NCBI GenBank assembly: GCA_964252035.1
Contig: OZ176213.1
Reading direction: 5' to 3' (one strand)
Source of the DNA: Podarcis erhardii
Lineage: Eukaryota
DNA length: 64,000 bases
Each line of letters starts with the position of its first letter. Position 1 is the stretch's first letter. The translations under genes and the position numbers were made by a program. Of this stretch, positions 31,632 through 50,754 are shown one piece after another. The notes under the pieces are model-generated. The model ran no database searches, was not told the origin of the DNA, and worked only from the letters and a program-made list of their open reading frames with translations.

Positions 31632-31751
31632 ATGAACTTAGATGATGACACAAAGTGGCTCGAGTGGGTAGCCAAACAGTTTGAAAGTATCGCCGGGGAA
31701 GATAAAGAGATCGACCTGGAAGAATTCAAAGCTGCTCTCAAGGTGAAGGAG
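31632..31751 (+). CDS. NOX5: NOX5 coding exon 1 (MNLDDDTKWLEWV...KVKE, EF1)
   Basis: Acceptor TTCTTAG at 31627, GCACCATG start context and a GC-type donor GAG|GCAAGT. Confidence 0.9.
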
Positions 31752-34700
31752 GCAAGTTTTGTCAAATGGGGTAGGAAACCCAATTGGGCTGAGGATTGTG
31801 ACAATGCAATGATGTTTTTGCTTAGAACGGCCCCTGTGTGAGGAAATACTGTGAAGATATTTGGCTTCACCCCTTTTTGGGGAGGGAATTTGTGCATATA
31901 GATTTGTTCATGCGTACTTGGAGATGCTTAATTGGGAATGGTGTGCAGAAGAAGGGTGGCTGATGGAGACTAGGAGGTTATGGGCAGAGAAGGAGGGTGC
32001 TGAAGAGCAAAATCAGCAGGGCGGGGGGGGAGAATGCTGGCATCAGTAGGGACTGAAAAAGTAAGGGAATGTTGAAGATTGGGGGATTTGGGGTTAGGTC
32101 AGAGTGGGGGGCCCATTTTTCAGAACCTATTTTTAATAACCAGCCAGATCTCCCTTTATCTGAAAGTCCCCAGTTCACTAATATTTCAAGTACTCAATTG
32201 CTTCTATTCCCATAATATTGAAGTAAGGTCTAAATAAAGACTAGTGAGAAATTGGAGGGTGTGTGTGTGTGTGATTTCCACTCCTGGATTAACCCCCACC
32301 CCCCAGTTGACTTTGCAAACATTTTCGCCCTCTCCTATAGTCCTTTTTCGCTGAGCGTTTCTTTGCTTTGTTTGACTTGGATGGAAGCGGCACCATCAGT
32401 TTGGACGAGCTGCTGGAGGCCTTGAAGCTGCTGGTACATGGAAGTGAAACAGACAAACTCCGGTTCCTCTTCCAAGTTTATGATGTGGACGGTAAAATTC
32501 CAAAACAGCACCCTTGTTCACTTGCATTTTGTCAAAACAATATCACTGTTCTACTCAGCATTGGCACTTTAGGGCAATAACTACCAATGCTCCTGGCTTG
32601 GTCCATTCACATGGAATGGTAAATGACTACAGCAATGTTTTATTATCAGATCAGTAATGTTTTTGTAACAGACATAAATGTAGCTTTTATTTTGGTGCAG
32701 AACTTTATTTCTGTTTTAGTGCCAGTATAACTTGATTACATCTCACTGTATCTTGAAATAAGTCTTCAGAAATTGTATCAAATCGTGGGCTATGAAATAT
32801 GTTGGAGCATTTACAAAGCTAGCCCAGCATGTCCAAATCCATTGTGTTGGTTGTTTCTTCAGTGCATAAAATAATGGTTATGAAAAAGTCCTCAGGGTTT
32901 TTTTTAGAGGCAAGAATATTCTTGTTAAAAGCGATTTCATATTTGTGTGTGTGAGTGTGTCGTTGTTGGGCTTGCCTTTGTCACTACTGCCCATTCACAC
33001 CACTGCTTGCACACCTGGAAGCAACAGGTGAACAGGCAGCAACAGGAAGGAAAGGGAAGCAAGAAAACCAGAACCCCCCATGCCTCTCTGGGCCTCAGAC
33101 AAGCTCTGCATGGGCCTGTGTTGTGGTAATCCAACCTAGAGGCTCCAACTGCCTTAAATCTTGCCTGTTGCAGATTTATTTGATGCCGACTGGAGATCCT
33201 CTTCCACTGTAGGCAGTGGGTCCATTGAACCTGAAGAATTGCGTACGGTCTTGGAGTCATGCCTGAAGGAGAGTTCAATATCTTTGCCAGAGAAGAAATT
33301 AGATGACCTCACGTTAGCCCTTTTCGAGTCGGCTGACTCTGACAACAGTGGGTCCATCACCTTCGAGGAGCTCAGGGAGGAACTGGAGCGCTTCCCAGAG
33401 GTCATGGAGAACTTAACCATAAGGTATTTTCTCTTCCACCTCCTAATCCAACTTTTCTCAACCCACCTAATGTCCTCCAGATGTTTTGGAGAAGTCCCAC
33501 CACTCCCAGCATCATACAGTCATGCAGGCTGGGGTCCATGGGAGTTGTGGCATTAAAACAGCTGGAGAGCACCAGGTTGGGGAAGACTGTATCCTGTAAC
33601 CCCAAATTACCCCCTGAAAATGCTGCTTCACTGTCCTCCAGCAGCAGTAAGGCGGCACCGGGGCTCCCTCATCCTCAGTTCCGTCTTACAATTCCTTCTG
33701 CCACTTACAGGAGGATCCATCCCATCAAACCAACACTTATTTTTATTTTTTTTTATTTATTTACATCCTGCCTAATTTTCAAAAGAAACTTGAGGCAGGT
33801 AACAAATCCAGCCAACACAATGATATTGACATATATAAGAATCCCCGTTAAAACACCCAGCATGAGATTAAAACAGTAACACAAAACACCAAAACTACTG
33901 TAACATATTCCAAAACAGCTATCACAAACAAACATCAAAGAGAAATAAGAGAAAGACGGACATGTTATCTGAAGGCCTTCTTAAAACAGGAACTCTTTTT
34001 TTTTACCAGCTGCCTAAAATTATGCTGGGGCAGGGCCTGACACACCTCGCTTTTCTTAATTTCTCTAGTTTTAGGAAGTTGTGCACCCATCAGACCAAAA
34101 GCTTGGGCCAAAGAGCCTGGGAAATACCAGCAGCAGAAGCAGAAAGAAGGTGGTGGTGTCAGGTTTCAGTTGCCATCTCTGCAGCTGGGTGGCTGGGCTC
34201 ATGAGAGTTGTAGCTGCAAGCAGCTGGAGGGCACCATGTTGGGGAAGGCTGCTTTGAACCATTGACTCAGCCTAGACAGGTCATTTTCATTGGCAGCCTA
34301 AGAAATATTTTCCCCTTTGACACCTTGAAATATTCTTGCCAGCAGCACCTGGGGTTTAGAAATAATTACCCACCCCTGCTTGCTTCCTAGGCGAAGAAAC
34401 TCGCTCTGGGAGCCTCTTTGAAGGAAAGCTGCACCCTTTTCCCTCAGCTGCAGCTGCCTGCATTCTCTTGGGGATGAGCTGCATTCCCCTGCTATGTTTC
34501 AGCTCTGCGTAATTGGAACTCTTGAGCCTGCTGCCGCTGCTGTCAGCTGTCATTGCAGCGGAAATCTGCTGCGGCTTGCAACACTGGGGCAGAGAGGACT
34601 TCGGTTTCCTTAGCAGATGAAAAACAGCCAAAGCATCTTGTGGCACCCTAAAGATTAACGCATTTATTCCCGCAGAAGCTTTCATGGATGAGAGCCTGTT

Positions 34701-37700
34701 TCGTTGGATGTGCTTGGCTGTGGGTTCTGCCCAGCGAAAGATGCCGCGATAAATCGGTTCCCATCTTTTAAAGGTGCCCCAAGTCTCTCTCGCTGATTTG
34801 GTTGCAGGGAAAAAACTAGAGCAGCTGTCCCTCTGGAATTCACAAAGGATCAGTGGTCGGAAGGAGAAAACTCCCTTCGGAAAAAGAGAAGGGCTGTATC
34901 TTTGTCTCTAGCTGCTTCCATGTTGGAGCCCTCTAGCGCTGCTGGGGTGTTGCTTTTCTGCAATTAACCAGAACCAAAATAAAAACTTAGTTTAGAGCCA
35001 TATTATCTAGCAGTAACCTTTCCAAGACGGGTCCTTTGCTTACTCATAAGCAAGTCCCATTTATCATGGATTTTCAGCATCACGATTTGAGTGTTTTGTA
35101 CTTGCAGGTTCAGCCTGTTTTGTTGTTGGCTCCTGAGAGAGAGCCAGAGGGAAATTAGCAATGAATCGCCTCTCTGAGCTATAGCCTCCGTGTCAGTTTC
35201 TTTTTCCAAAGCAGTGCCATGCCTATCCGTGACCTGGTGCCAGATGTGGAATCATCGGAAGACAAACCAGACACCCCACAGGTCAATGACCTTGAGGAGC
35301 AGGCAGGTTCCCCTATAGGGGTCCTCTGGGTTGATACCTGCTTGGAACTGTAAGAGGAGAATGGCGGCACCAAAAGTTCCAGTTCCAAGCCAAAGTGCAA
35401 TGGCATAGCATGCATCTATAGGCCCAGTGTGGGTAAGGAACCCTCTTGTAAGGCATCCATGAAACTCATTCAGTACCAGAAGTAGCTGCCAGGATGATGT
35501 CTAGGATGCCAAAGTATGTAAGGTCATCCTCTTGAGCCTTCTAGTTGCTGGAAGCAACACAGGTCTCTGGCTCCTTGCTCCTGAATCTAGTTCCTTCTCT
35601 TTATACCATGCCTAAACTCCCTGTCATGCTAAATGTTAGACTGCTGCCTGACCTGGCGCCTGGATCATATTTTGGACCTAAACTGCTTGACCTTGGTTTG
35701 CCAGACTGTAATACACCTGCAATCCTGCTTAAGCCAACTGGGACCCAACCGCAACTGAGTTGCACTAGAACATGGCAGTCCTGTGGCTATAGAGACCAAT
35801 ATGGGAGAGACATGTTTTGTTGCAACTGGGGCAGATGAAGGCATCTGGGTTTGCCGCTGCAGATGCACTGTGGCGTTTCTTCTCTCTGCACTCTTCCCAG
35901 CAGTCATTCCTCCTCTGGTCACTGCTTGAGGATATATGATCTGTCTCCAGGCACTGCAGTCGTCCACAAAGGATACCCACAAGGCAGTGTTGATGTTGCC
36001 AGCTTTCATGTCACATTTGCAGACATATTTGTAGCACAGAGCTGGTCTGCCAATGGACCTGGGGCCTGAAGCCAGCTCCCTGTAGAGCATGTTCTACCAT
36101 CTTCCGTTCTGTGGATGGCAAATGACAAAATAGCAGTGAACGTCATGGTTAAAGAAATAGGAATGTGTGGAAGCTCACGAGCTGACTGATCACACACGTG
36201 GAAAAACTGAATCTGAAATATCTGCCTGAAATACAATAAAGCCTACATCTGGAAGCGAAGAATGTCAGTTCCAGAGAGGAGCCAAGGCAGAACCAACCTT
36301 TACCTATTGCTTTATTTGAGAATTCCAGAGGGCTTAGACAAAGTCCAGTGGACTTTTCTTTGCGTTGAGCATGTGGCAAGGACTAAGTCATGCCAAATCT
36401 GGGGTCTGCTGTCCAGTTCGGTGCTTTACTTGTCAAGCGATCCTTGGGCATCACACAATGGCTTCTCTAGTCTAAAAGAGGCACGACAGGCTGCAGCAAG
36501 AGGTTCTATCGAGCAGATCCTGCATCTTCTGAAATTTCCTTATGTGATAGCAGTCCTCTGGTACTCGAGTGAACCAGCAGGTGGCTCTGTGTGATCACTG
36601 AGGCTAGAAGCACATGCTGTTCACAGAAGCCAGACCCCCCCCCCGAGCTATCATGCTCCAGTATCTGAATACATATTGCCTCACCCAAGGCAGAAACATC
36701 CACCCATTGGCCATTCTTCAAGTCAGCCCACATATTCTTGTTCCCAGTAAGCCACAGTTCAGCTGCACTGTGTAACAAAGCTTTAGAACAGCAGCCACAG
36801 ACAACTCGTGCAAGTGAGCCAAGCCACATGCTATGTGGGAAAGTACATTTCCCTCTGTGCTTTTCCAGTTCACCTGCCAATCTGCCCCTGGGAGAAACTA
36901 CAGTGGTACCTCGGGTTAAGAACTTAATTCGTTCTGGAGGTCCGTTCTTAACCTGAAACTTCTTAACCTGAAGTACCACTTTAGCTAATGGGGCCTCCCA
37001 CTGCCGCCAAGCCACTGCCACGCAATTTCTGTTCTCATCCTGAAGCAAAGTTCTTAACCTGAGGTAATATTTCTGGGTTAGCAGAGGCTGTAACCTGAAG
37101 CGTCTGTAAGCCGAGGTACCACTGTATTTTCTAACCCCCAAATGGCAATCCGTCATGCTGGGAGGTTGAAGAAAACAACTCAGTAACAGTGGTTGTGTTA
37201 CACCATATGTTGAAAGCACATGACTTTCCCCAAAGAATTCTGGGAACTGTAGTTTGTTAAGGATGCTGGGAAGTATAGCTTCTGAGGGGGTAAACTACAG
37301 TTCTTGGAATTCTTGGGGTGGAGGGAGTCATGTGCTTGTAAACAGAGGGGAGAATGTTCTTAGATGTCCCCTCTAAAGAGCCTGTGGGAAAGCAAAAGGT
37401 TGTGGCAGAAGTAAGATTATGTGAACATTAATTTTGCCCACCCAATATCAGGTCTATTTCTTGGTATATTTAGGAACCTAGAAGAGCCTGTTGGATCAGG
37501 CCAGGGGCCTGTCTGGTCCAGCATCCTGATTCTCACAGCGATCAACCAGATGCCTGTGGGAAACCTGCAGGCAGGATCCGAGCACAAGAGCCCTCTCTCC
37601 TCCTGTGGTTTCCAGTCCTGCCCTCTGTCCCTTCCTTTATCCCACCAGCCCCAATAGGCAGCAGCTGCTGCTGCTGCTGCTGAGCTCAGGGTTATGCAAG

Positions 37701-38205
37701 CTATGTAGCCCAAACAGGTCTACTGAGAACCCCAAGGTTTGTAGACACTGAAAAATATTTACAAAGAAAACCTAAGAGGCCCCCGCCAAAAAAGAAAGAA
37801 AGAAAGAAAACTCAGTTCAGTTAAGGTTTCACTTGTGGTTTATAGAGTCCTGAGAGCTCTATTTGCATTCATGGGTTGAAAGCAAGGCTTACGTTCTAGT
37901 GAGCGATTAAAAGAGCAACTGTTTGCAGTATGATATGTGCATCGGGGAGAGATGCTCTCCTGAAACTTTTGTGAACTGCTGAGTATGGCTAAGCTGGAAG
38001 GTGTATGCTTCATTAGGGCGTGTTGAATTTTCAAGCTTTCAAATTCCAAAAATAACTTGGGAACTCAAAAGATGTTTTGCTTAAATCAATATAATTCAGT
38101 TTTGCTTGGTAAGTAAGATGTGTGAAAAATTGCCTTAAAAACAAAGATTGCCAAGTACTTATATGTTATATATTATTATTAGTAGTAGTAGTAGTAGTAT
38201 TCAAT

Positions 38206-38249
<44 letters not shown>

Positions 38250-38676
38250 GCATTACCTGACATTTTCAGAAGGCAGGCTTAAAATTATTGAGTTTTCAGA
38301 TAGCAGTTTGTGCTTATTCATCAGACGTAGACTTACCAAGCTGCATGTTGTCCAGTCACATCAATAATAGCAGATTCATATTCTTCACACCCCAAACCAT
38401 ATTTTTAAGACCGCTTGCTGAAAAAATTTGCAAAAATTAAGTTTCACCCCCTAAAATCAGGGAGAGGGCCTTCTTGGTAGTGGCACCTGCCCTGTGGAAC
38501 AACTTGCTATCAGATGTTAAGGAAATAAACAACTACCTGACTTTTAGAAAACATCTGAAGGCAGCCCTGTTTAGGAAGGTTTTTAATCTTTGATGTATTT
38601 ATTGTGTTTTTAATATTCTATTGGAAGCCGCCCAGAGTGGCTGGGGAAACTCAACCAGATGGGCAGGGTATAAATA

Positions 38677-38728
<52 letters not shown>

Positions 38729-41700
38729 TTATATGGCATGCTTCATGGTCTCTTTTCTCTGGGTCTTTCTCTCCCCTCTCGCAGTGCTGCAAGCTGGTTA
38801 AAGCCCCCCACTGCGCTCAGGAAGAGCCACGCGCCACGCTACCTGCGCCCAGCCTATTGGCATAACAACAGGAGCAAGCTTCTCTTCCTGGGCGGCTACC
38901 TGTGTGTGAACATCATCCTCTTCACCTTTGCGGCCTTGAAGCATGTTGACTCTGGCCCCTGGATCATGTTGGCCAAAGGCTGCGGTCAGTGCCTGAACTT
39001 CAACTGTGCATTTATAGTGGTGAGTAACGCGATGTATTCATTATGTAGTGAATGTCTTAAGCATACAGAAGTGGCCGTGGTGGGTCAGAGCAGAGGTCCG
39101 GCGAAAAGACGGCGCCAGAACAAGTTAATTCTCTCTGTTTGTATTCTATGCTGCTCCTCTAAGGCTAATAAAAACCCACAGGCTCCAATAAGTAACTCAG
39201 GTGGTGAGTATCAGCAAGATCTGAGCCACAGTAGGGCTACTGAGAAACAGGAAGGCAATATTGGCCATGCTGGGGAGAACCTCAAGTTTTACAAAAGTAC
39301 AATAAGTCTTTAAAATATTTTTTCAACCCATTGAGGACTGAAGATACTCAATAAGTTGAGTGTTAGTTGGAAAAACAAAAGAAGAAAAGGTTTGGGAATG
39401 CAATGGAGTGTCTTGGAGAAGGGCATGGCTGGCTCGGCTACCATGATACTCCATTCCATACCACCACCACCTATGGTTCCTATGGAAAAGAACACTTTGT
39501 TGCAGGTCCCCTTATTGATTTCTGTCAAATCTCGCCTGTTGCTGCTTACGTGTGCTTTGAATGTTTGAAATAAACAGATTCGCCTAGTCCAGCATTCTGT
39601 GTCTGACAATGCCCAATTCACAAGCATCCTTGGCAGCCATCCTTGATTTTGTCCAGGCTCTGGAAGATGCTCATAGCCAAGAAGTGGAACACAAGCTTTG
39701 CATGCATAGCTTCAATTCCCTGGCATCTCTAAATGGCTGGGAAAGCACATGGGCTTTTTTTTCAGCTGGAACTCACCAGAACTGAGTTTTGTCACCTCTT
39801 TGGTGCATTGCGTCACCTCTGTAGCTTTGCGGCACTTTGGCATACCACTTTGTGTTGCACAATGGAGGCTGTGTGCGGGGGTGGCACAGCAATTGGTGTG
39901 GTGTAGGGTGGCAGTAGTGTGGTGGGTGCTCCCCTAAAATAAGCTTAACAAGTTCTGTCACCTCTTTTTCTAGAAAAAAAAAGCCCTGGAAGCTGTATCC
40001 CTGATGCTGCGAAGAGCCACAACCAGTTAGGCTATATAGCTAGAACAGGCTTCCTCAACCTCGGCCCTCCAGACATTTCAAGACTACAATTCCCATCATC
40101 CCTGACCACTGGTCCTGCAAGTTAGGGATCATGGGAGCTGTAGGCCAAAAACATCTGGAGGGCCAAAGTTGAGGAAGCCTGAGCTAGAAGGACTAAACTT
40201 TTGACTCACTATAAATCCATTTCATATGCTGGTGGAGCACTGTCCTTTTAGAAGCATGCCTGGTGCAAACATGTGGCTCTTCAACTAACTTCTACAGCTA
40301 TTTTCTCCCCCCTTGAAGGTGCTGATGTTGCGCCGATGTTTGACCTGGTTACGGGCTACCTGGGTAGCCAGACTTCTGCCTCTAGACCAGAATGTCATTC
40401 TGCACCAGCTAATCGGCTATGCAGTAGCGGTTCTAACAGCAGTTCACACAGGGGCCCATGTAGCCAACTTTGGTAAGTGACAGTTTTCTAATTATTTATT
40501 TAAAATATTTTTATACAGCCTTTCAATCCTACCATGTGTCCTTTGAAGTAACAGGTAGGCCTGGGGGTGGGGGTGGCTCTCTGAACTTTCCACCTCCACC
40601 ATAAGGACATAAGGAGAACAATGATTTTACCCACCCATGGGCTGCTCTCCTGTGTTTTCCCTGTGGTGCTTGCATCTTTTTTTAGGCTACAGAAAACCTG
40701 ACATTTTTAGAGTCCAATAACACAATCTCCACAGGTGTAAATGACTTAGCACTAATCCCCCCTTTTTTAAAAAAAGAAGTGTGGTTTTTACACGTGCAGT
40801 GATGTCTATTGCCTTGCATATCCACATAGGCACACTTGAACTACTGCCTTTCCCCATGGTGTCATTTTATCAGTATGTTGCTTTCCCCCCCCTTAATCAG
40901 GATTTTAATTTGCGCTAAAACACCTATTTTTAAAAACTGAAATATTCACACGCAATAGTGCGTAAATCAGAAATGTGTGGGTTTTTTGCATACGTTAATG
41001 TATCATTGTGTGTTGTTTCTAAAGGCTGCCTGCTCTAGCATTTCTGGACGGTACCATTTTATCATCTCGTTCGCCCACCCCAATCTTCCAAGTTGCTCTA
41101 AAACTCTTTGAAACACCTGTTTAAGGTTTTTGAAGCAACTGTGCCATAGCAGTTAAATAAAAATGTGCTTTAGTGCATACCTGGACAGTTGTTTATAATC
41201 AAATTGTTTAAAGGTCTAGAAGATGCATGCTCTGGTTCTTCTCCAACATCTTGCTCCTTGCTCATATGCTTTGATGTGGGCAGAACGGATCAGGATGTTC
41301 ACATACAAAAAGTGCTATCTGCTTGAAGAAAGTGTGTGCACTCCCTACATTCCCTGCCTACACAAACAGACATACTGTCTGCTCCAACATGCCAGGGGCT
41401 TATGGGAGTTGTAGTCCAACTATCATCTGGATGATACAAGGTTAGCAAAGGCTGTCTTAGAGCTTCATGGTTCATATCATAATAATATGTCATCATCATA
41501 ATAATTTATTATTTATACCCCGCCCATCTGGCGGGATTTCCCCAGCCACTCTGGGTGGCTTCCAATAAAATATACAGTAATGCATCAAACATTAAAACAT
41601 TAAAAGCTTCCCTAAACAGGGCTGCCTTCAGATGTCTTCTAAAAGTCTGGTAGTTGTTGTTCTCTTTGACATCGGGTGGGAGGGTGTTCCACAGGGCGGG

Positions 41701-44700
41701 TGCCACTACCGAGAAGGCCCTCTGCCTGGTTCCCTGTAACTTGGCTTCTCACAGTGAGGGAACTGCCAGAAGGCCCTCGCCACCGGACCTCAGTGTCTGG
41801 GCAGAACGATGGAGGAGGAGCCGCTCCTTCAGATATACTGGACCGAGGCCGTTTAGGGCTTTAAAGGTCAGCACCAACACTGAATTGTGCTCGGAAATGT
41901 ACAGAATGCCGTTATTGCGGTGCTAGAATTCTCTTAGTGGAGGTCTTTCTCTCTCCCCTATAGTTAGAATGTCTCAGATCAAAGGCACTTATCAGCTTTG
42001 GGAATACCTCTTCACCACCCGGCCTGGGATTGGCTGGATTTATGGAACTGCCTCCCTCACAGGCCTCATGCTGCAGCTCCTCATCGCCCTTATGCTGGTG
42101 TGCTCTAGTACTTTCGTCCGCAAGGGTGGCCATTTTGAGGTGACGTGCTTGACTTCCTCCTCCTTCCTGTTGCTTACGTCATTTGCCTTGTGAGTCAAGT
42201 AACTCCCAAGTGTCAGTGATCTCTTTTGAGCTTTGCTTATTTTAAATTATCGATGTGCTCTTCGTCCAGTTTTAACTTCAGGCTCATCCACATTTCCAGT
42301 TGTCCAGTGGAAACTTCAATCCACAGAAAAAAATGATTGACATTTGAACCGATTCAGCGGGACACAGTGGGTTTTCCTGGGGAAAGTGGTGGGGCAAGCA
42401 GAAGTGTAGACAAGCCCTTAATCGTTCAAAACACCGCCTTGCTCTCTTGAATAAGTAAGATGCCCTTCTTTGTCACCAGCAGGTCTTCTACTGGACTCAC
42501 CTTTCTTACATCTTCATTTGGGCTTTGCTAATTGTCCACGGTCCTAATTTTTGGAAGTGGTTTGTGGTACCTGGATTTCTTTTCCTCTTAGAGAAGATCT
42601 TCGGTGTTGCCATGTCACACGTTGGAGGACTGTACATAGTGGAAATCAACCTCTTGCCCTCAAAGGTTTGCTTCCCAAACAATGATGAATTAAAAGGGGA
42701 AATGTGTGAAAATACCTAATTTTCCGGAAAGAGTAGAAGTGGAAGTGAGGTGGCTTGAGCATCTGATTTGATTTCCCCGAGCTTACAAAGCATTCTGATT
42801 TGTTTCAGGGAGGTTATAGGATGTTGTATCAATCCCAGAGTTTTCCATGCATTTTTAACATCAAATTCCTTACCCCAGAAATTCATAGCATCCTAGAATT
42901 GCAGAGTTGGAATGGACTCCATGGGAAATCTAGTCCAACCCTCTGCAAAGCAGGAATCACAGCTAAAGAATCCCTGACAGGTGGCCATCCACCCTCTGTT
43001 TAAAATCCTCAAATGAAGGAGAGTTCACCACCTTCCAAGGTAGTACATTTCACTGTCAAACAGCTATTACCATCAGAAAGTTATTTCTAAGGTTTAATCA
43101 GAATCTCATTTATGGTCAGGTTGTACTTTGCAGAGCAGGAGAAAACAAGCTTGCTCCATCTTTCATGTGAATGCCTGTTCAGATATTTGAAGAAGGCACT
43201 CATATCACCTCTCATCCTTCTCTTCTCCAGGCTAAACATACCTAAATCCCTCAATTGTTCCTCATAATAACAATCATTCTGAATAGAATTATTTTTGAAT
43301 GGATTTGCTGTGCAAGAGCACCAAATCCACTGGAAGGCTGTATGCGTACCATACATTTAAAGCACATGACTTCTCCCAGAGAATCCTGGCAATTGCAGTT
43401 TACTCCTCACAGAGCTACAGTTCCCAGCACCCTTTACAAACTACAGCTCCCAGGATTCTTTGAGGGGGAGTAATGGACTTGGAATGCCTAGATCATGCGC
43501 AGCCTCATTGTGCAACCTGAATTTGCTGACATGCGACAGAATCCCAACCCGCTAAATAGTGATCAACTAGAATCCTCCTATGAGCTGGGCATTGTGCTTC
43601 CAGGTCATATGCAAACAAGTTGTTCCCTTAGTGATGGCATTTCCCCTCTTCACATGTGCCCTATCTTTCTCTTTTGGATCCAGGTGACTCATTTGGTGAT
43701 CAAGAGACCTCCGTTTTTCCACTACAAACCTGGTGACTACGTGTACCTGAATATCCCAGTCATAGCCAAGTATGAATGGCATCCATTCACCATCAGCAGT
43801 GCTCCAGAGCAACCAGGTAGATCTCAAGCCAGCCGGAAAGCAGCCTGGGCTGGGGTTTAAAGGCAAGGGCATCAAACAGCCCACACCAACCTGGCGCCCT
43901 GCAGGTGTCGTGCACTCAGGTCCTGCATGCATGTTTCCCATTGAGGCACCTGGTTGGCCACTGTGAGGAGAAAGCATTGGACTAGATGGATCCAGCAGCT
44001 TGATCCAGCAGCCAGGCTATTCTTGTGTTCTTCTTCTTCTTATTATTATTTAATGAATTTATATGCTGCCCTATACCCAGGGGTCTCAGGGCAGTTCACA
44101 GAATAAAATCAAGATATAAAACCACACAATACCTAATAAAAATAAAAACAGCAACCCAGTACCCTTCCACACACAAAAAACTCCCACATTTTAAAAGGGC
44201 ATAGGATGTAAATCGGATCAACCAAATGCCTGGTTAAAAAGGAACGTTTTTGCCTGGTGCCTAAAGGTGTATAATGAAGGTGAACTTCCCTGGGGAGAGC
44301 ATTCCACAGATGGGGAGCCACTGCAGAGAAGGCCCTGTTCTTGTGTTGCCACCCTCTGGACCTCTTGAGGAGGAGGGCCTCAGAAGAAGATCTTAGGGTC
44401 TGGGTAGGTTCATATGGAAAGAGGTGGTCCTTGAGGTATTGCGGTCCTGAGCCATTTAAGGCTTTATAGGTTAAAACCAGCACTTATGCCAAGTCCTCCT
44501 ATCAGTCCCAACCAGCACTGCCAGAAGCTATAGTCGAAAACATCTGGAGGGTATCAGGTTGGCGAAGGATGGTGTAAAAACCTTGATATGTAATTCATCT
44601 GGTCCCATTGTCTGTCATGCCAGGAAGATAGAGTCCCATGCTATTGTCCCAGAGCAGGGCTGTACAGATCTACTGAAGCAACCCACATCAATGCTGCAAT

Positions 44701-47700
44701 AGGTTTCTCTCTGCAGAAATATTGATAAAGTCACTTCTCTCCCTAATCCCCTTCTTGTGAGCCAGGCTTCATATTCCCATTGGTTTGTATGTGTTATGAA
44801 ATTAACGTTGGTCCTGTTCCTACTCTTTTCAAAATCAAGTTTCCAATATTCCAAAAGGCTTGCAAAGCTTCGATCAGGCTCAGGACGTTTCAGGTATAAT
44901 CCCTTTCCTGGTGTCTCCAGCCCACTCAAACCTTGACATCTCATCCTTGAGGCTGCTGTAAGTAAGTGGTGAGTTCCTGCCTCTTAATTTGGGAAAGGTG
45001 GCCTTGATCCACTTCCTGCTATGAGGTGGGTTACCTCCTGGCTCTTGGCTCAGTTTAATGAGGACGGCTAAGGATGCTTATGTTTCTCACTGGGTAACCT
45101 TCTGCTTTCTCTCCAAAGGGACCATCTGGCTGCATATACGGTCCCTGGGACAGTGGACCAACAGGCTATATGAATACTTCTGGAATCAACAGGAGTGTCA
45201 TGACCACAGGTCCGAATGGCTACACAGAAAGGCAAAGGCAAAGAAGAAGAACAGGTCCCAGAAATGGGTGCAGGTTTGCGATTAAAACAACAACAACTCA
45301 GTAACCATGACTGTGGTGTCTTCAGTGGCATTTAAAAAATCTTAATGGGTTGATTCTAAGTTAAATTCTGTGGCATTGCACTGGATGAACATGGTACTGG
45401 GGGGTTATGGAGTGGGGGGGTAGAGGCAAAGCTGAGGCTCTGGGCATGCTTGGACTTTAATTGCATAGAGAAATCATTTCCGTGGAGCAAGGTCTTTTGT
45501 GGGGAGGGGGGGTTACAATTTGTGTAGGCAGAATACTGAGCACAACCCATCACTGACTCACCCAGCCCTTGTCAACTTGTGGACAGCAACACAGAGCTGA
45601 AGCAAAGCCAAGAGGGCCGCAGGTCAGATCCTGCAGCTCACCATGAACTTTTGTTCCAGAAATGTCTCTTTGGCTCCTCTGACCTGGACCAGCCTGTGGC
45701 CAGCAGTTCCGATGAGATGGTTGAGATCTTATCTTATATGCCCATCAGGCATCCCAGCTGGGAGACTGCGAGTGTCGGAGCAGCCAGCCAGTGCAAGGAG
45801 GGGAACACACAACCCAGAAGAGGAAAGGTCTGGCTTCTCCTGGCAAATATGTGTACATTCCATCCTTGATAGATCTGCCCCTCTCCCCCACAGAAAGGCA
45901 TACTTCAGCTCTTGCTATGTGGCAAGGAATCCAGAGGCTGTGTGGAAGGGTTTAGTTTCCTTCAGGAGTGAGGCTACAGGAGGCTTAGGTGATTCCTTGA
46001 ATCTTGACAAATGTGCAAGGAGAACAGAGCAGAAGCAAACAGACTCCTAAGACAGACATGGAAAATTTTCACCAGTTCCCCTGTGCTTCCAGGCCAGCAT
46101 CATATAGCACTAAACTCATAGCTCTATTCCTCTGTTTCTGAATGAAAAAAGTTCAACTTCTTTCATCTCTCCTTGCAGAGTGCTGGTTTCAGACTTACAG
46201 GTAAATTGGCCTCTTAAGAAAACTTGCATTAGGGAACACTGTGAACTGGCAGGGTATATTGGTGTGCTTTTTCTGTATATATATATAAAATTTGTTTCCT
46301 TATTCTTTGTTAAATAATTAAAAAAAAAATAAAAAGAGAAAGGAAAAAAATGAGAAAGCAAAAGAAACAATAATTTACAGTGCAACCCACCCCTAAATAG
46401 GGCTCTTTTTTCTAATGGGATATGGTGGACCTTTCGCTAACAAGAACATATTCGTTAACAGATTCCTGGCAGGCTTAGTGAGAATCAGAGACTCTGTAAC
46501 ATCAAGGTAAGATCTGCTGCTGCTCTATGAAATGCCTTGAGCACCCACAAGCAGGCCAGGTTCTGTACAGAGTTTAGAAGCATCTCTTCCCCAGAGACAT
46601 TGGGGGTGGGGGTGCAGGAGGGAGCAACCAGGTATCAGGAGAAAGCTCAGGGTGTATCAAGTAGCTGAGTACAGAAGTCAAAGTTTGTAAGGCTTAATAA
46701 ACGGGCAGGCAGGCACTTGAAGAAAAAAGAGGTGGGAATGTGCCCTGGGCAGAGACAGAAGCATATTAGCACCTCCAACACCACAGTTTCTCTTAGCGTG
46801 TGTCAGGTGATGCTAAGCTAAAATGTGGGAGAGGGCTTTGGGACAACGTTCCCCCTCTTAAAAAGATGTCTCCTCACTTTTGATGCAGTTTAAATCTCTC
46901 TCTCAGAGGGAGAGGAAAGCGAAAGCTTTGCTTGCCCTCCGTTCTGTCACGTAGCCAAATCTAAATAGGCTATATCTGGTGTTGCGGTGACATCATGTTT
47001 GTTACACAATCCCTGATGGGCTGGGATCATGCAGAGAAGAAGCCCTTCCAAGAGAAAAGCTGGCAGCAAGACAGCAACCAACAGGAAAAGCGATGGCCGC
47101 AAAGAGGTGTCCCAGAAGGGAGGGACAGTGGCAGCTAGTGGCAATGGCAGGGGTAGCGAATCCCTAGGCAAGCCAGGCCCCAAATGCAGGCCAGGGTTCT
47201 GAACTCCCACAGTTGTGAATTCTTCCTTATCACTAAGAAGATTATTCACTGAAAGCTCAGTTAACTCTGCAGTCACCAAGGATAAATCATAACATAACAA
47301 GCCAGATTTACCACGAACAGGATCAAATCAGTGCCGTGCCGTTACCTCCCCAGTGTTACATCGATGGTCCTTATGGGACTCCCACTCGAAGGATCTTCAC
47401 ATCAGAGCATGCCGTTCTGATAGGAGCAGGAATTGGGATTACACCCTTTGCCTCCATTTTGCAAAGCATCATGTTCAGGTTGGTCTGCTGCAGATTAGAA
47501 TCAATTCTTTTGTCAAAGTTGCAGAACCTGCATTTTTTTCCCCTTTCCAAAAACTAGTTTTAGAATGTGCAATCTTTTATTTGATCAACATCTTCTGCAA
47601 GGGTGAGGAAACCTTTTCAGTCTGAGAGCTATATTCTCACATGGGTACCTCCTGAGGGTCAGGGCAAAAGCAGGTGTGTCTGTACCCTTGTACAGCAGAC

Positions 47701-48670
47701 TAAATTCCAGCCACAAAAATGCCAGAGGTCATTACAGATGATGCATCTCTACAGTCTTCATTCAGGTAAGCAAGAGGGATTATCGCAGGTCAAGGACACA
47801 TTCCAGCCTTCCCTAAACATTCAGGAAGTGTAGCTCTGGGGAGGAAGTGTGGCTTACTGAGAATCTTCATGGATACGGTAAATAGAGAGATCTGCCTTTG
47901 GTTCTTGGAGGTCTGCATTCCACCCCAAACCCTCTCCCAGCCTGAGGTTTCCCACCCCTGGTCTACTGTCAAAAAGGCAGTATGATTCCAAACCTTGTCT
48001 ACTTCTTGTAAACCAATACACAGAACTTTTAAAAATGGTTGCAACTTTTTAAAAAATCGCTATTGAACTTTCCAAGTAATAAGCAACAGCCATTCCTGGT
48101 TGTATTTGTTAATGCCAGCTGCTAAGAAAGGCTGGCGATTCTCTGCTCACCTCAAAAGATACCCTATAATTTTTCTTTCTTTCTTTCTAGACACCGTATG
48201 CGAAAGCAAACCTCTTCTAGCCAGGAAAACATGAAACTCCTGAAGGTGAGGTGGCGTCCTCAGCTGTGGCTTGGACGTTTGTGCAGAAAAGCATTTTTTG
48301 CTACAAAAACAATGAACAGCAGTAGCAGTAAGTAAAACCTTCTTGTCTTTAGGTTGACTTTATCTGGATCAACAGAGACCAAAAATCATTTGAATGGTTT
48401 GTAAGCCTGCTGACCCAGCTGGAAATCAATCAGGCTGAAGAAGACCCTAGCAGTAGGTGACCATTTTTTGTCCTTGTCTTTCTTTAACCGTGACCCAAAC
48501 TGAACACCATCCTCAAGAGGATGAACCAGAATGATGCCACCTGAGGCTTCCAAACTTAAACTGTGGGTTGGATATATTTTGATGGGAAAACTGGACTTAA
48601 TTCACACATGAACCATCCTAAACCCCCCCCCCAGCATCCTTTATCCCTCCCTCCCTCCCTCTCCCCCCCC

Positions 48671-48719
<49 letters not shown>

Positions 48720-49591
48720 CTTCTCTTAGTGGGGTACCAGAAAACCTGAACTGGCTCAAAACACAGAATTTCTCCAGGCTTTTCCTTGTTGAAATGTAAA
48801 AAAAACACACATGCAAAATACCATGTTTCAGTTGACCTCTCAATATGATTTCAAAGAAATGTGTGATGGATCATTGAGGGGTGGGGGCTGTGCAAGGTAT
48901 GCCCACTGCCTGCCACCACCAATGCTCCTGGCAGCCATGCCACCAGCATGTTCAGCATGCATGAGAAGGTGGCACTCTGTGTGTGTACCAATGAACCAGC
49001 ACAGAATTTCTCCACATGCGGTAAGATCCTAGGCCAACCAGAGTGGTGCATCTAGTTATCTCCTGCTTTGACTACTGCAATGCACTCTACGTTTGAAGGT
49101 GAACCAGAAACAACAGTTAATCTGGAACGTGGCAGCTAGACTGGTGACTGGGAGCGGCTGCCGAGACCATATAACACCGCTCTTGAAAGAACTACATTGG
49201 CTCCCAGTACATTTCCAAGCACAATTCAAAGTGTTGGTGCTGACCTTTAAAGCCCTAAAGGGCCTCGATCCAGTATACCTGAAGGAGCGTCTCCACCCTC
49301 ATTGTTTAGCCTGGACACTGAGGTCCAGCTCTGAGCGCCTTCTGGCAGTTCCCTCACTGCAAGAAGTGAGGTTACAGGGAACTTGGCGGATGGCCTTCTC
49401 AGCAGTGGTGCCTGCCCTGTGGAACGCCCTCCCACCAGATGTCAAGGAAATAAACAACTACCTGACTTTTAGAAGACATCTGAAGGCAGCCCTGTTTAGG
49501 GAAGTTTTTAATGTTTGATGTTTTATCGTGTTTTAAATATTCTGTTGGGAGCTGCGCAGAGTGGCTGGGGAAACCCAGCCAGATGGGCGGG

Positions 49592-49637
<46 letters not shown>

Positions 49638-50754
49638 CCAGGACCTCGCCCACCTCTTATGTGGAGGAGCTTTATGCACATATATGTTGCCCTGCCTGTG
49701 TAGAGCCACATCTCATGAGGGCCAAAGATGGGAAGGGGCTATAGCTCAGTAGAAGAGCCCCTGCTTTGTAGTCCCTGGTGGCATCTCCAGGTAGGGCTGG
49801 GAGAGGTTTCCTGAAGCCCTGGAGAGCCACTGCTGCCAGTCAGTGTAGACAATACTGAGCTATATGGACCCAAGGTTCTCAGTCCGTATAAAGCAGTTTC
49901 CTCTGTTCCTATGCAGCTGGTGGGTAGAGGTAAGGGTCACAAACTCCTGAACCCCCCGCTTCAGATATCTTTCCATGTTCCTTCTAATGTGCAGACCGCT
50001 TCTTGGAGATGCACTTGTACATGACCTCTGCGCTTGGCAAGAATGACATGAAGGCTATCGGCCTGCAGATGGCGTTAGATCTCCTAGCCAAAAAGGAGAA
50101 GAAAGACTCCATCACGGGCCTCAAGACAAGAACCCAGCCAGGGCGCCCAGATTGGAACAAGGTAGACTTCACAAAGCTACTTTTAACATAATTTACAACA
50201 CCTCCCCCCCCCAAAAAAAACCCCGGTGCCCCATGTACGTATTTAAGCTGCAGCTCCCATCAGTCCCTGACACCAAAACAGCTGAATGGCACAAGGCTGG
50301 TAAGACTGATTCCCAAGCATCCTTGTGGCTGTGGTGTGAGCTGCTTTTAAAGAACAGATTCTAAGTCAGTATTTCAGCCTGCTCAGTGGGTTCCCTTCGG
50401 CCAGGCAGCCTCAGCCTAACTGACCCCACAGAATTGTTGTGAAAATAAAATGGAGGCGGGCGGAACCTTTGGAGGAAGGGCAGAATAAAAATGCATTTTT
50501 TTTATTTAAAAAATGCATTTGAGATGTATTGGGGGAGCCCAAGGCGAGGCCAGCACCTTCTTCTGAAGCTTGAAAAGAGAGTTGTTAGATTTCTGTCTTG
50601 TATCTCTTTCCGGTACCCCCAGCTCTTTCAGAAACTAGCGAAAGAAAACAAAGGGAAGGTCCATGTCTTCTTCTGCGGCTCTCCAGCTCTTGCCAAGGTC
50701 ATCAAAGCTCATTGCGAACAGTTCAACTTCCAGTTCTTCAAGGAGCACTTTTGA
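31632..50754 (+). CDS. NOX5: NADPH oxidase 5 (EF-hand Ca2+-activated), join(31632..31751,32341..32491,33213..33423,38785..39019,40319..40472,41964..42139,42483..42665,43684..43816,45119..45273,46462..46506,47354..47478,48191..48245,48353..48452,49995..50161,50623..50754), 713 aa
   Basis: Fifteen phase-consistent exons total 2142 nt. Motifs seen: four EF-hands, heme-ligating His pairs (HQLIGY..HTGAH; WTHLSY..VHG), FAD motif HPFTISSAP, NADPH motifs DGPYG, GAGIGITPF and FFCGS, and a terminal Phe. Confidence 0.96.
32341..32491 (+). CDS. NOX5: NOX5 exon (SFFAERFF...DLDGSGTISLDEL...QVYDVD)
   Basis: CTATAG acceptor and G|GTAAAA donor. Contains EF2 and the start of EF3. Confidence 0.95.
33213..33423 (+). 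CDS. NOX5: NOX5 exon (GSGSIEPEEL...DSDNSGSITFEEL...ENLTI)
   Basis: CTGTAG acceptor and AG|GTATTT donor. Contains the end of EF3 and EF4. Confidence 0.95.
34610..34800. mobile_element. Penelope-like element terminal fragment
   Basis: TCTTGTGGCACCCTAAAGATTAAC..TTTATT..AAGCTTTCATGG resembles squamate Penelope ends. Recognition only. Confidence 0.4.
35200..36130 (-). mobile_element. RTE-clade LINE 3' fragment
   Basis: Minus ORFs LYRELASGPRSIGRPALCYKYVCKCDMKA..W and a C-terminal zinc-finger-like FICPSCNKTCLSHIGLYSH. Confidence 0.8.
36901..37124. mobile_element. Tc1/mariner-type MITE family A
   Basis: TIR CAGTGGTACCTCGG/CCGAGGTACCACTG flanked by TA. Opposite orientation to the copies at 56878, 58710 and 61824. 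Confidence 0.9.
37475..37640. mobile_element. CR1-related repeat end (AGAAGAGCCTG..GGATCAGGCC family; relatives near 400-570, 760-1200, 26377-26580, 56510-56830, 63180-63380)
   Basis: Mutually similar blocks recur across the window. The family assignment is from recognition only. Confidence 0.55.
38461..38728 (+). mobile_element. L2-like LINE 3' end with (ATT)n tail
   Basis: Similar to 49380-49632 and 19820-20028. Confidence 0.8.
38785..39019 (+). CDS. NOX5: NOX5 exon (AASWL...AYWHNNRSK...AKGCGQCLNFNCAFIV)
   Basis: CTCGCAG acceptor and GTG|GTGAGT donor. Encodes TM1-TM2. Confidence 0.95.
40046..40181. mobile_element. hAT-type palindromic MITE
   Basis: TIR CAGGCTTCCTCAAC/GTTGAGGAAGCCTG with a perfect 8-bp TSD AGCTAGAA. 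Confidence 0.9.
40319..40472 (+). CDS. NOX5: NOX5 exon (VLMLRRCLTWLR...HQLIGY...HTGAHVANF)
   Basis: TTGAAG acceptor and G|GTAAGT donor. Contains heme His residues. Confidence 0.95.
41499..41893 (-). mobile_element. L2-like LINE 3' fragment
   Basis: Reverse-complement match to 49200-49600. Confidence 0.8.
41964..42139 (+). CDS. NOX5: NOX5 exon (..TTRPGIGWIYGTAS...RKGGHFE)
   Basis: CCCTATAG acceptor and GAG|GTGACG donor. Confidence 0.95.
42483..42665 (+). CDS. NOX5: NOX5 exon (VFYWTHLSY...HGPNFWKW...NLLPSK)
   Basis: CAGCAG acceptor and AAG|GTTTGC donor. Confidence 0.95.
42881..43265 (-). mobile_element. CR1 LINE 3' fragment
   Basis: Minus ORF EEQLRDLGMFSLEKRRMRGDM..FKYL and the CR1 3' motif TTGGACTAGAT..CTTCCAACTCT in reverse. 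Confidence 0.85.
43684..43816 (+). CDS. NOX5: NOX5 exon (VTHLVIKRPPFF...EWHPFTISSAPEQP)
   Basis: ATCCAG acceptor and G|GTAGAT donor. Contains the FAD-binding motif. Confidence 0.95.
44040..44490 (-). mobile_element. L2-like LINE 3' fragment (second subfamily)
   Basis: Minus ORF MLVLTYKALNGSGPQYLKDHL...RAFSAVAPHLWNALP. Confidence 0.75.
45119..45273 (+). CDS. NOX5: NOX5 exon (TIWLHIRSLGQWTNRLYEYF...RSQKWVQ)
   Basis: CTCCAAAG acceptor and CAG|GTTTGC donor. The 3' boundary is less certain than the 5'. Confidence 0.88.
46462..46506 (+). CDS. NOX5: NOX5 45-nt exon (IPGRLSENQRLCNIK)
   Basis: TTAACAG acceptor and AAG|GTAAGA donor. Matches the short ...CNIK exon that precedes CYIDGPYG. Confidence 0.92.
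47354..47478 (+). CDS. NOX5: NOX5 exon (CYIDGPYGTPTRRIF...GAGIGITPFASILQSIMF)
   Basis: CCCCAG acceptor and AG|GTTGGT donor. Contains NADPH-binding motifs. Confidence 0.96.
48191..48245 (+). CDS. NOX5: NOX5 exon (HRMRKQTSSSQENMKLLK), shortened
   Basis: TTTCTAG acceptor after a long pyrimidine tract and AAG|GTGAGG donor. Phase 2 in and phase 0 out fit. Confidence 0.92.
48353..48452 (+). CDS. NOX5: NOX5 exon (VDFIWINRDQKSFEWF...EEDPS)
   Basis: CTTTAG acceptor and A|GTAGGT donor (phase 1). Confidence 0.94.
49041..49632 (+). mobile_element. L2-like LINE 3' fragment with (TAT)n tail
   Basis: ORF 49093-49518 ...NVAARLVTG...LHWLPVHFQAQFKVLVLTFKAL. Confidence 0.85.
49730..49912 (+). mobile_element. 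tRNA-derived SINE (relatives at 60055-60165 and 61340-61440)
   Basis: A-box-like TAGCTCAGTAG head and a CCAGTCAGTGTAGAC..CTGAGCTA..GGACC body repeated at 60055-60165. Confidence 0.6.
49995..50161 (+). CDS. NOX5: NOX5 exon (RFLEMHLYMTSALGKNDMK...GRPDWNK)
   Basis: GTGCAG acceptor and AAG|GTAGAC donor. Confidence 0.95.
50623..50754 (+). CDS. NOX5: NOX5 last coding exon (LFQKLAKENKGKVHVFFCGSPALAK...FKEHF*)
   Basis: CCCCAG acceptor and TGA stop at 50752-50754. Confidence 0.95.
   Translation, partial: LFQKLAKENKGKVHVFFCGSPALAKVIKAHCEQFNFQFFKEHF

Follow-up and report, generated by a model that had tools for sequence, protein, structure and literature searches.

Loss of the zinc-binding CxxC motif and shortening of the INS2 loop in an intact lacertid lizard NOX5

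The NOX5 locus

The window analysed in this work, a stretch of 64,000 nucleotides from the lizard Podarcis erhardii, hosts the coding region of NADPH oxidase 5 (NOX5). The spliced gene model was guided by the NOX5 protein of Podarcis lilfordi (P0362), to which it is identical at 761 of 769 residues. The coordinates are collected in Table 1. The introns are of the GT-AG type throughout, except for intron 1, which has an apparent GC donor at 31751/31752 (GAA followed by GCAAGT).

Table 1. Coordinates of the NOX5 coding features in the window
Feature	Position	Strand	Remark
NOX5 whole coding region	31632..50751	+	16 coding exons, 769 aa, no internal stop
Coding exon 1	31632-31751	+	
Coding exon 2	32341-32491	+	
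Coding exon 3	33213-33423	+	
Coding exon 4	38785-39019	+	
Coding exon 5	40319-40472	+	
Coding exon 6	41964-42139	+	
Coding exon 7	42483-42665	+	
Coding exon 8	43684-43816	+	
Coding exon 9	45119-45273	+	
Coding exon 10	45660-45827	+	
Coding exon 11	46462-46506	+	
Coding exon 12	47354-47478	+	NADPH-binding GIGITPF exon, equivalent to human 519-560
Coding exon 13	48191-48245	+	shortened INS2 loop HRMRKQTSSSQENMKLLK, without CxxC
Coding exon 14	48353-48452	+	VDFIWINRDQKSFEWF...; joint 48245>48353 found in an RNA-like contig
Coding exon 15	49995-50161	+	
Coding exon 16	50623-50751	+	

The encoded protein has the parts expected of a NOX5. Three canonical Dx[DN]xSG loops of EF-hands are found at model residues 52, 88 and 132, the ferric-reductase transmembrane part carries the haem motif HTGAH in exon 5 (one His pair, inspected by motif), and the dehydrogenase domain contains HPFT for FAD binding and GIGITPF, CGSP and the C-terminal Phe for NADPH binding. 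Precomputed Pfam annotations of P0362 list the EF-hand, ferric-reductase (PF01794), FAD (PF08022) and NAD (PF08030) domains. Human NOX5 (PDB 8U7Y/8U85-87) has the same EF-hand, six-helix haem, FAD and NADPH domains with near-identical cofactor motifs; in exon 12 alone 40 of 42 residues are identical to the PDB human chain (E = 1e-21). The window protein is 99% identical to those of other lacertids, which are nested in a squamate NOX5 clade. The initial annotation had described the catalytic motifs and the reading frame as intact, and the uninterrupted 769-residue model with its cofactor motifs bears this out. The window holds no second copy of exons 13 and 14.

Exons 10 and 11 belong to INS1 (the PhosR region). 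Of the two, exon 10 is found in P0362, is shorter in P0365 and is missing from the Zootoca protein P0359, which suggests that this phospho-regulatory insertion is alternatively spliced.

A short exon 13 without the CxxC motif

In human NOX5, INS2 (residues 564-578) is a NOX5-specific insertion in the NADPH-binding domain; in the published model, the CXXC motifs of the two subunits together coordinate Zn2+ at the interface of the dimer (Cui et al. 2024, PMC11088703). The human C568S or C571S substitution destabilises the dimer and lowers activity, and the chelator TPEN inhibits the enzyme (PMC11088703). The same study reports conservation of INS2 and the CXXC across NOX5 orthologs, proposes that Zn2+ and redox signals regulate the enzyme through this motif, and names another dimer contact, in the FAD-binding domain (FBD) and linker, involving F422, H424, R426, R530 and R531. 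The initial annotation, citing cryo-EM work, had described this CxxC as a zinc site important for stability and activity, in agreement with that paper.

Exon 13 of the lizard gene is 55 nucleotides long. It is preceded by a polypyrimidine tract and the acceptor AG at 48189-90 and followed by GTGAGG, with the donor GT at 48246-47. Its first base finishes the Arg codon opened by the exon ending at 47478, and the remaining 54 nucleotides encode HRMRKQTSSSQENMKLLK, which is 18 residues with no Cys at all; exon 14 then opens with VDFIWINRDQ. The corresponding human segment, residues 561-587 in the PDB chain (8u7y and others), is HQKRKHTCPSCQHSWIEGVQDNMKLHK and carries C568 and C571. A HMMER comparison with that chain aligns the lacertid dehydrogenase domain from end to end (E = 2.6e-106) and places one 9-residue gap in exon 13, with the flanks aligned on both sides. 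The gap falls exactly at human C568-P-S-C571-QHSWIEGV, and the residues aligned with the human CxxC position are S-S-S-Q. The coordinates, the peptide and the 9-residue difference from a 27-residue human segment, as first annotated, were all reproduced.

Could the missing residues be encoded nearby? Three-frame translation of the introns flanking exon 13 gave no homologous CxxC-coding piece, in line with the earlier reasoning that a missed exon cannot supply the motif. The sole match was CQSC at 47511, a chance occurrence that is non-homologous and not in the right frame, and it was rejected as a hidden or alternative exon. The statement that the exon contains no internal GT donor needs correcting: a GT does occur inside it at 48196 (CGT-ATG), although this one precedes the gap and is unused.

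The INS2 CxxC, which provides two of the four zinc ligands, is absent from the NOX5 of the window, and so is a full-length INS2: the linker measures 18 residues, against 27-28 in human and alligator and 12 in NOX2 and the cyanobacterial csNOX5. With S-S-S-Q in place of C568-P-S-C571 and an exon 9 residues shorter, a zinc site of the human type cannot form in the lizard protein. We have thus confirmed that this lacertid NOX5 naturally lacks the zinc-binding CxxC, as had been proposed, given the 55-nucleotide exon, its spliced joints and the proteins of related species described below.

The short exon in other organisms

In order to examine the exon outside this assembly, Logan contigs were placed on window positions 47200-48600. 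Contigs of three related organisms (A, B and C) cover 47200-48425, and none of them has an indel or substitution in exon 13; that of organism A shows 0 differences from the window, and those of B and C show 14-15 intronic differences and three small intronic indels. In an RNA-like run of organism E, a 219-nucleotide contig joins 47478>48191 and a 146-nucleotide contig joins 48245>48353, both with GT..AG ends. These contigs are spliced mRNA with the short exon 13; the RNA label of this run (X15) is the tool's guess, and the GT..AG joints argue for transcripts. In this run the short exon is joined to both of its neighbours. The NOX5 proteins of Podarcis lilfordi and Zootoca vivipara have the same 18 residues as the window, and that of the amphisbaenian Rhineura has the same exon length.

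One annotated protein departs from this pattern. Podarcis muralis P0389 (UniProt A0A670JGN2) runs past the 47478 donor into the intron (47479-47510, LVCCRLESIL) and then joins in the middle of exon 13. This is a mis-splice of the annotation and not biology.

The contigs also contain hints of a further locus. A second contig in three organisms (runs X1, X4 and X5) matches 48351-48425 only, with two differences (48381 A>G and 48395 T>G) and unlike sequence upstream; the main contigs of the exon 14 region also end there, at 48425. Lacertid genomes may accordingly contain, outside this locus, a partial second copy of the 3' part of NOX5.

Distribution of the motif across NOX5

An exhaustive HMMER search was seeded by the exon 12 sequence. 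Nearly all representatives that reach past exon 12 have a C-P-x-C some 8 residues on, an exception being the gecko Sphaerodactylus (P0019). A word search with a bird NOX5 (P0010, residues 545-700) gave birds and one catfish entry as its best 120 matches. A profile (A2) built from the mollusc-like full-length P0097, the gecko fragment and the window exons retrieved full-length lacertid and cordylid proteins, and a last search seeded by Podarcis NOX5 yielded proteins from a wide range of tetrapods. From all these proteins we took the linker between ...SIMxR and VDFIW and aligned it.

The CxxC is kept in 221 of 235 segments from the two wide searches. C-P-x-C is found in alligator, neognath birds, 13 of 15 amphibians, coelacanth, gar, sturgeon, sharks, a hemichordate and bivalves, and the vertebrates among these share a near-invariant 28-residue exon, YRMRKQN-CPNC-xYSWCExLKDNEMKLRK. 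None of the 25 squamate sequences has the motif. These cover Lacertidae, Rhineura, a cordylid, a skink, six gecko species, six snake species and four iguanians. The first Cys is replaced by Ser in nearly all of them and the second by Gln in most; the resulting S-x-S-Q spans Gekkota, Iguania and Lacertoidea, and snakes mostly read S-C-S-H. The motif is likewise absent from all 10 turtle sequences, where the first Cys has become Asp, Asn or Tyr in 9 of 10 and the protein is otherwise conserved; in Chelonoidis most of the exon is missing, in what looks like a mis-annotation. Single-species losses are found in Protopterus, Microcaecilia, Leptobrachium, emu and a few teleosts.

The initial annotation had named a CxxC commonly missing in non-mammalian NOX5 as an observation that would refute it. 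This objection applies by half: the motif is missing in all squamates and turtles sampled, and sporadically in others, but most other non-mammalian lineages keep it. These alignments qualify the published claim of a conserved CXXC in NOX5 orthologs (PMC11088703).

The palaeognath entries P0024 (emu), P0023 (Rhea) and P0003 (ostrich) look degenerate or mis-annotated near this exon. That of the emu reads CPRRGHSRC, and its following exon is altered too (VDFIRISRDQQHFEWL). NOX5 may be decaying in ratites, judging by these entries. In a fish, Pangasianodon gigas, the 878-residue 'hypothetical protein' P0151 carries two copies of the C-terminal 200 residues of NOX5, probably through a tandem duplication or a fusion in the annotation.

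Order of the losses and deletions

A maximum likelihood (ML) tree was built from 52 NOX5 proteins after removing the INS2 columns. It agrees with the species tree, with SH-aLRT support of 100 for Squamata, 94 for turtles with archosaurs and 91 for Rhineura with Lacertidae. The state of the CxxC changes five times on this tree, two of the changes falling on the stems of Squamata and Testudines.

Since the motif is absent in 25/25 squamates and most of them read S-x-S-Q, we infer that the cysteines were lost in the squamate stem, a placement drawn from the sequences of six major clades. Geckos, iguanians, the skink and the cordylid have a loop of 26-28 residues, of ancestral or near-ancestral length, and no cysteines, so the cysteine loss would have come before the deletion. 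The lacertid deletion amounts to 10 residues when counted against the ancestral 28 and to 9 against the human 27. The 10-residue gap is common to Lacertidae and Rhineura only, the Rhineura peptide (HRMRKQASFSQENMKLLK) being nearly the same as that of the window, and therefore arose in their common ancestor. Snakes have a different deletion of 5 residues, and the gecko Heteronotia one of 2.

The turtle loss of the first Cys is independent of the squamate loss: the residues that replace it differ, the loop mostly retains its full length, and CPxC persists in archosaurs, the sister group. The initial annotation had left room for a zinc-site loss that was recent or special to this genome, and this does not hold, both cysteines having been replaced already in the squamate stem.

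Constraint on the loop and on the gene

Mean pairwise identity was compared, group by group, between the INS2 exon and the rest of the dehydrogenase domain. In groups that keep the CxxC the exon is the better conserved part, with 0.83 against 0.75 in amphibians and 0.76 against 0.71 in the other keepers. In squamates the order is reversed (0.51 against 0.71), as it is in turtles (0.74 against 0.84).

Differences were counted as near-fixed if shared by at least 90% of squamates on the one side and at least 85% of other vertebrates on the other. Only 4 were found in the whole alignment: T14A, A112S, the first Cys to Ser, and M678L. No compensating squamate-specific substitution was identified among these 4, and linking any of them to the interface would take a structure. 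The interface residues FFHYK and TRRIF are conserved in squamates, and the terminal branches of lacertids in the ML tree are short (0.01). Taken together, the alignments indicate that strong constraint acts on NOX5 as a whole, relaxation being confined to the INS2 loop.

Discussion

In this work, we have described a lizard NOX5 that differs from the human enzyme at a site for which a structural and regulatory role has been proposed. We consider it very probable that a zinc-bridged contact was lost long ago, that the loss was tolerated and that the loop then decayed, all within a lacertid gene that is itself intact, expressed and not decaying. According to this account, both cysteines would have been substituted in the squamate stem (N-C-P-N-C to T/A-S-x-S-Q), abolishing the inter-subunit Cys4 zinc site. 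The INS2 loop, once released from the constraint of that site, would then have drifted. The ancestor of Lacertidae and Rhineura would have dropped 10 residues in frame and the snakes 5 residues separately, while turtles would have lost the first Cys independently. In this way the lacertid loop would have become shorter by about two thirds and been left without its zinc-binding CxxC.

What would such a protein do? The path from Ca2+ and the EF-hands through NADPH and FAD to the haems appears to be untouched. With the electron path preserved and the Ca2+ switch likewise, the lizard protein should still be a Ca2+-activated oxidase. It would do without zinc- or thiol-dependent stabilisation at the INS2 dimer contact and, if it is a dimer at all, would be held together by the FAD-binding domain/linker interface, where the conserved FFHYK and TRRIF make a single-interface dimer possible. 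A homodimer prediction for the Zootoca dehydrogenase domain (two copies of P0359 400-711), run without controls, gave a score of 0.00, which speaks neither for nor against a dimer.

Comparison with more distant oxidases is helpful here. In the dehydrogenase domains of both cyanobacterial csNOX5 (PDB 5O0X) and NOX2, the linker from the GIGxTPF helix to the next strand has 12 residues and contains neither a CxxC nor a zinc site, and INS2, which at full length adds about 15 residues to this linker, is therefore an add-on of animal NOX5 that lies outside the catalytic machinery. The 18-residue lacertid linker has covered two thirds of the distance back to the 12-residue state. That said, csNOX5 and NOX2 are not orthologues of the lizard protein, which is a true animal NOX5 that has lost the insertion secondarily. 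Work by Magnani et al. in 2017 reportedly found csNOX5 to be active.

The idea that the short exon is an artefact of assembly or annotation, or a rare allele, with 27-30 nucleotides really present, can be set aside almost completely. It has no direct support beyond the reminder, given by the mis-spliced Podarcis muralis protein, that annotations of this region are fallible, and the same 55-nucleotide exon is found in contigs of three other organisms, none of which shows a longer form, and in a spliced RNA-like contig; the proteins of Podarcis lilfordi, Zootoca and Rhineura agree in length. Only slightly more credible is the view that the whole of NOX5 is under relaxed selection and heading towards a pseudogene in this lineage, an early sign of which had been suspected in the initial annotation. 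Such a fate has precedents, in that mice and rats have lost NOX5 (PMC10458973), and the palaeognath entries look degenerate around this very exon. Against it stand the intact 769-residue frame with all cofactor motifs, the spliced transcript contigs, full-length genes in 25 squamate sequences across the whole order, and the short lacertid branches with just 4 near-fixed squamate differences.

A functional shift, in which removal of the CxxC was selected in squamates, and again in turtles, because it changed the oligomeric state of the enzyme or released it from zinc and redox regulation, deserves more thought, though we regard it as rather unlikely. The motif has been proposed as a Zn2+ and redox regulatory handle (PMC11088703), its loss occurred twice in whole orders and was never reversed, the remaining protein is strongly constrained, and a possible setting can be named, e.g. 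sperm. The loop left behind, however, varies freely in squamates (0.51 identity and three separate deletions), which resembles drift, and the sporadic losses in a lungfish, a caecilian, a frog and some teleosts suggest that the site is simply losable. What counts against a tolerated loss, the reading that we prefer, is the harm done by human C568S and C571S together with the lack of an identified compensating change: as single-Cys mutants of the human protein fail, an uncompensated loss would be expected to hurt. Yet all lizards, snakes and turtles sampled are without the Cys pair and have an otherwise intact gene, so the zinc site would seem to be dispensable in nature.

Whether squamate and turtle NOX5 is zinc-free and fully active, with an oligomeric state or regulation unlike that of the human enzyme, is to our minds evenly balanced on the sequences at hand. 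If so, we would expect a monomer or a single-interface dimer that responds neither to zinc chelation nor to oxidation of thiols at this site. The Cys4 zinc bridge would then be a dispensable regulatory add-on of animal NOX5 and not a structural necessity. Hidden compensating changes would be implied, and these could explain the failure of human C568S and C571S.

These proteins are already public as NADPH oxidase 5; as a natural variant that is zinc-free and has a shortened loop, the lizard protein is unreported. In full-text searches of the literature, the absence of the NOX5 CXXC in reptiles was not reported, and the cryo-EM paper alone linked NOX5 with the CXXC. The only structural study of human NOX5 thus calls the motif conserved and finds single Cys mutants crippled, while two reptile orders are without it, and the human regulatory model should not be assumed for reptile NOX5.

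Natural variants of this kind could help to separate the roles of the zinc site (stability, dimerisation, and zinc or redox regulation) from the needs of catalysis. They form a convenient series, from a full-length loop without the Cys pair (geckos such as Gekko, iguanians such as Anolis, and turtles; the cordylid Hemicordylus also lacks the motif) through the 5-residue deletion of snakes (e.g. Pantherophis) to the 10-residue deletion of lacertids and Rhineura, with alligator and birds as close controls that bear the CxxC. Four of the snake proteins (P0397, P0402, P0424 and P0431) have a Cys and a His two apart at the old CxxC site, and this S-C-S-H could in principle offer metal ligands, to judge from its residues; the His is replaced by Q in Protobothrops and by R in Thamnophis.
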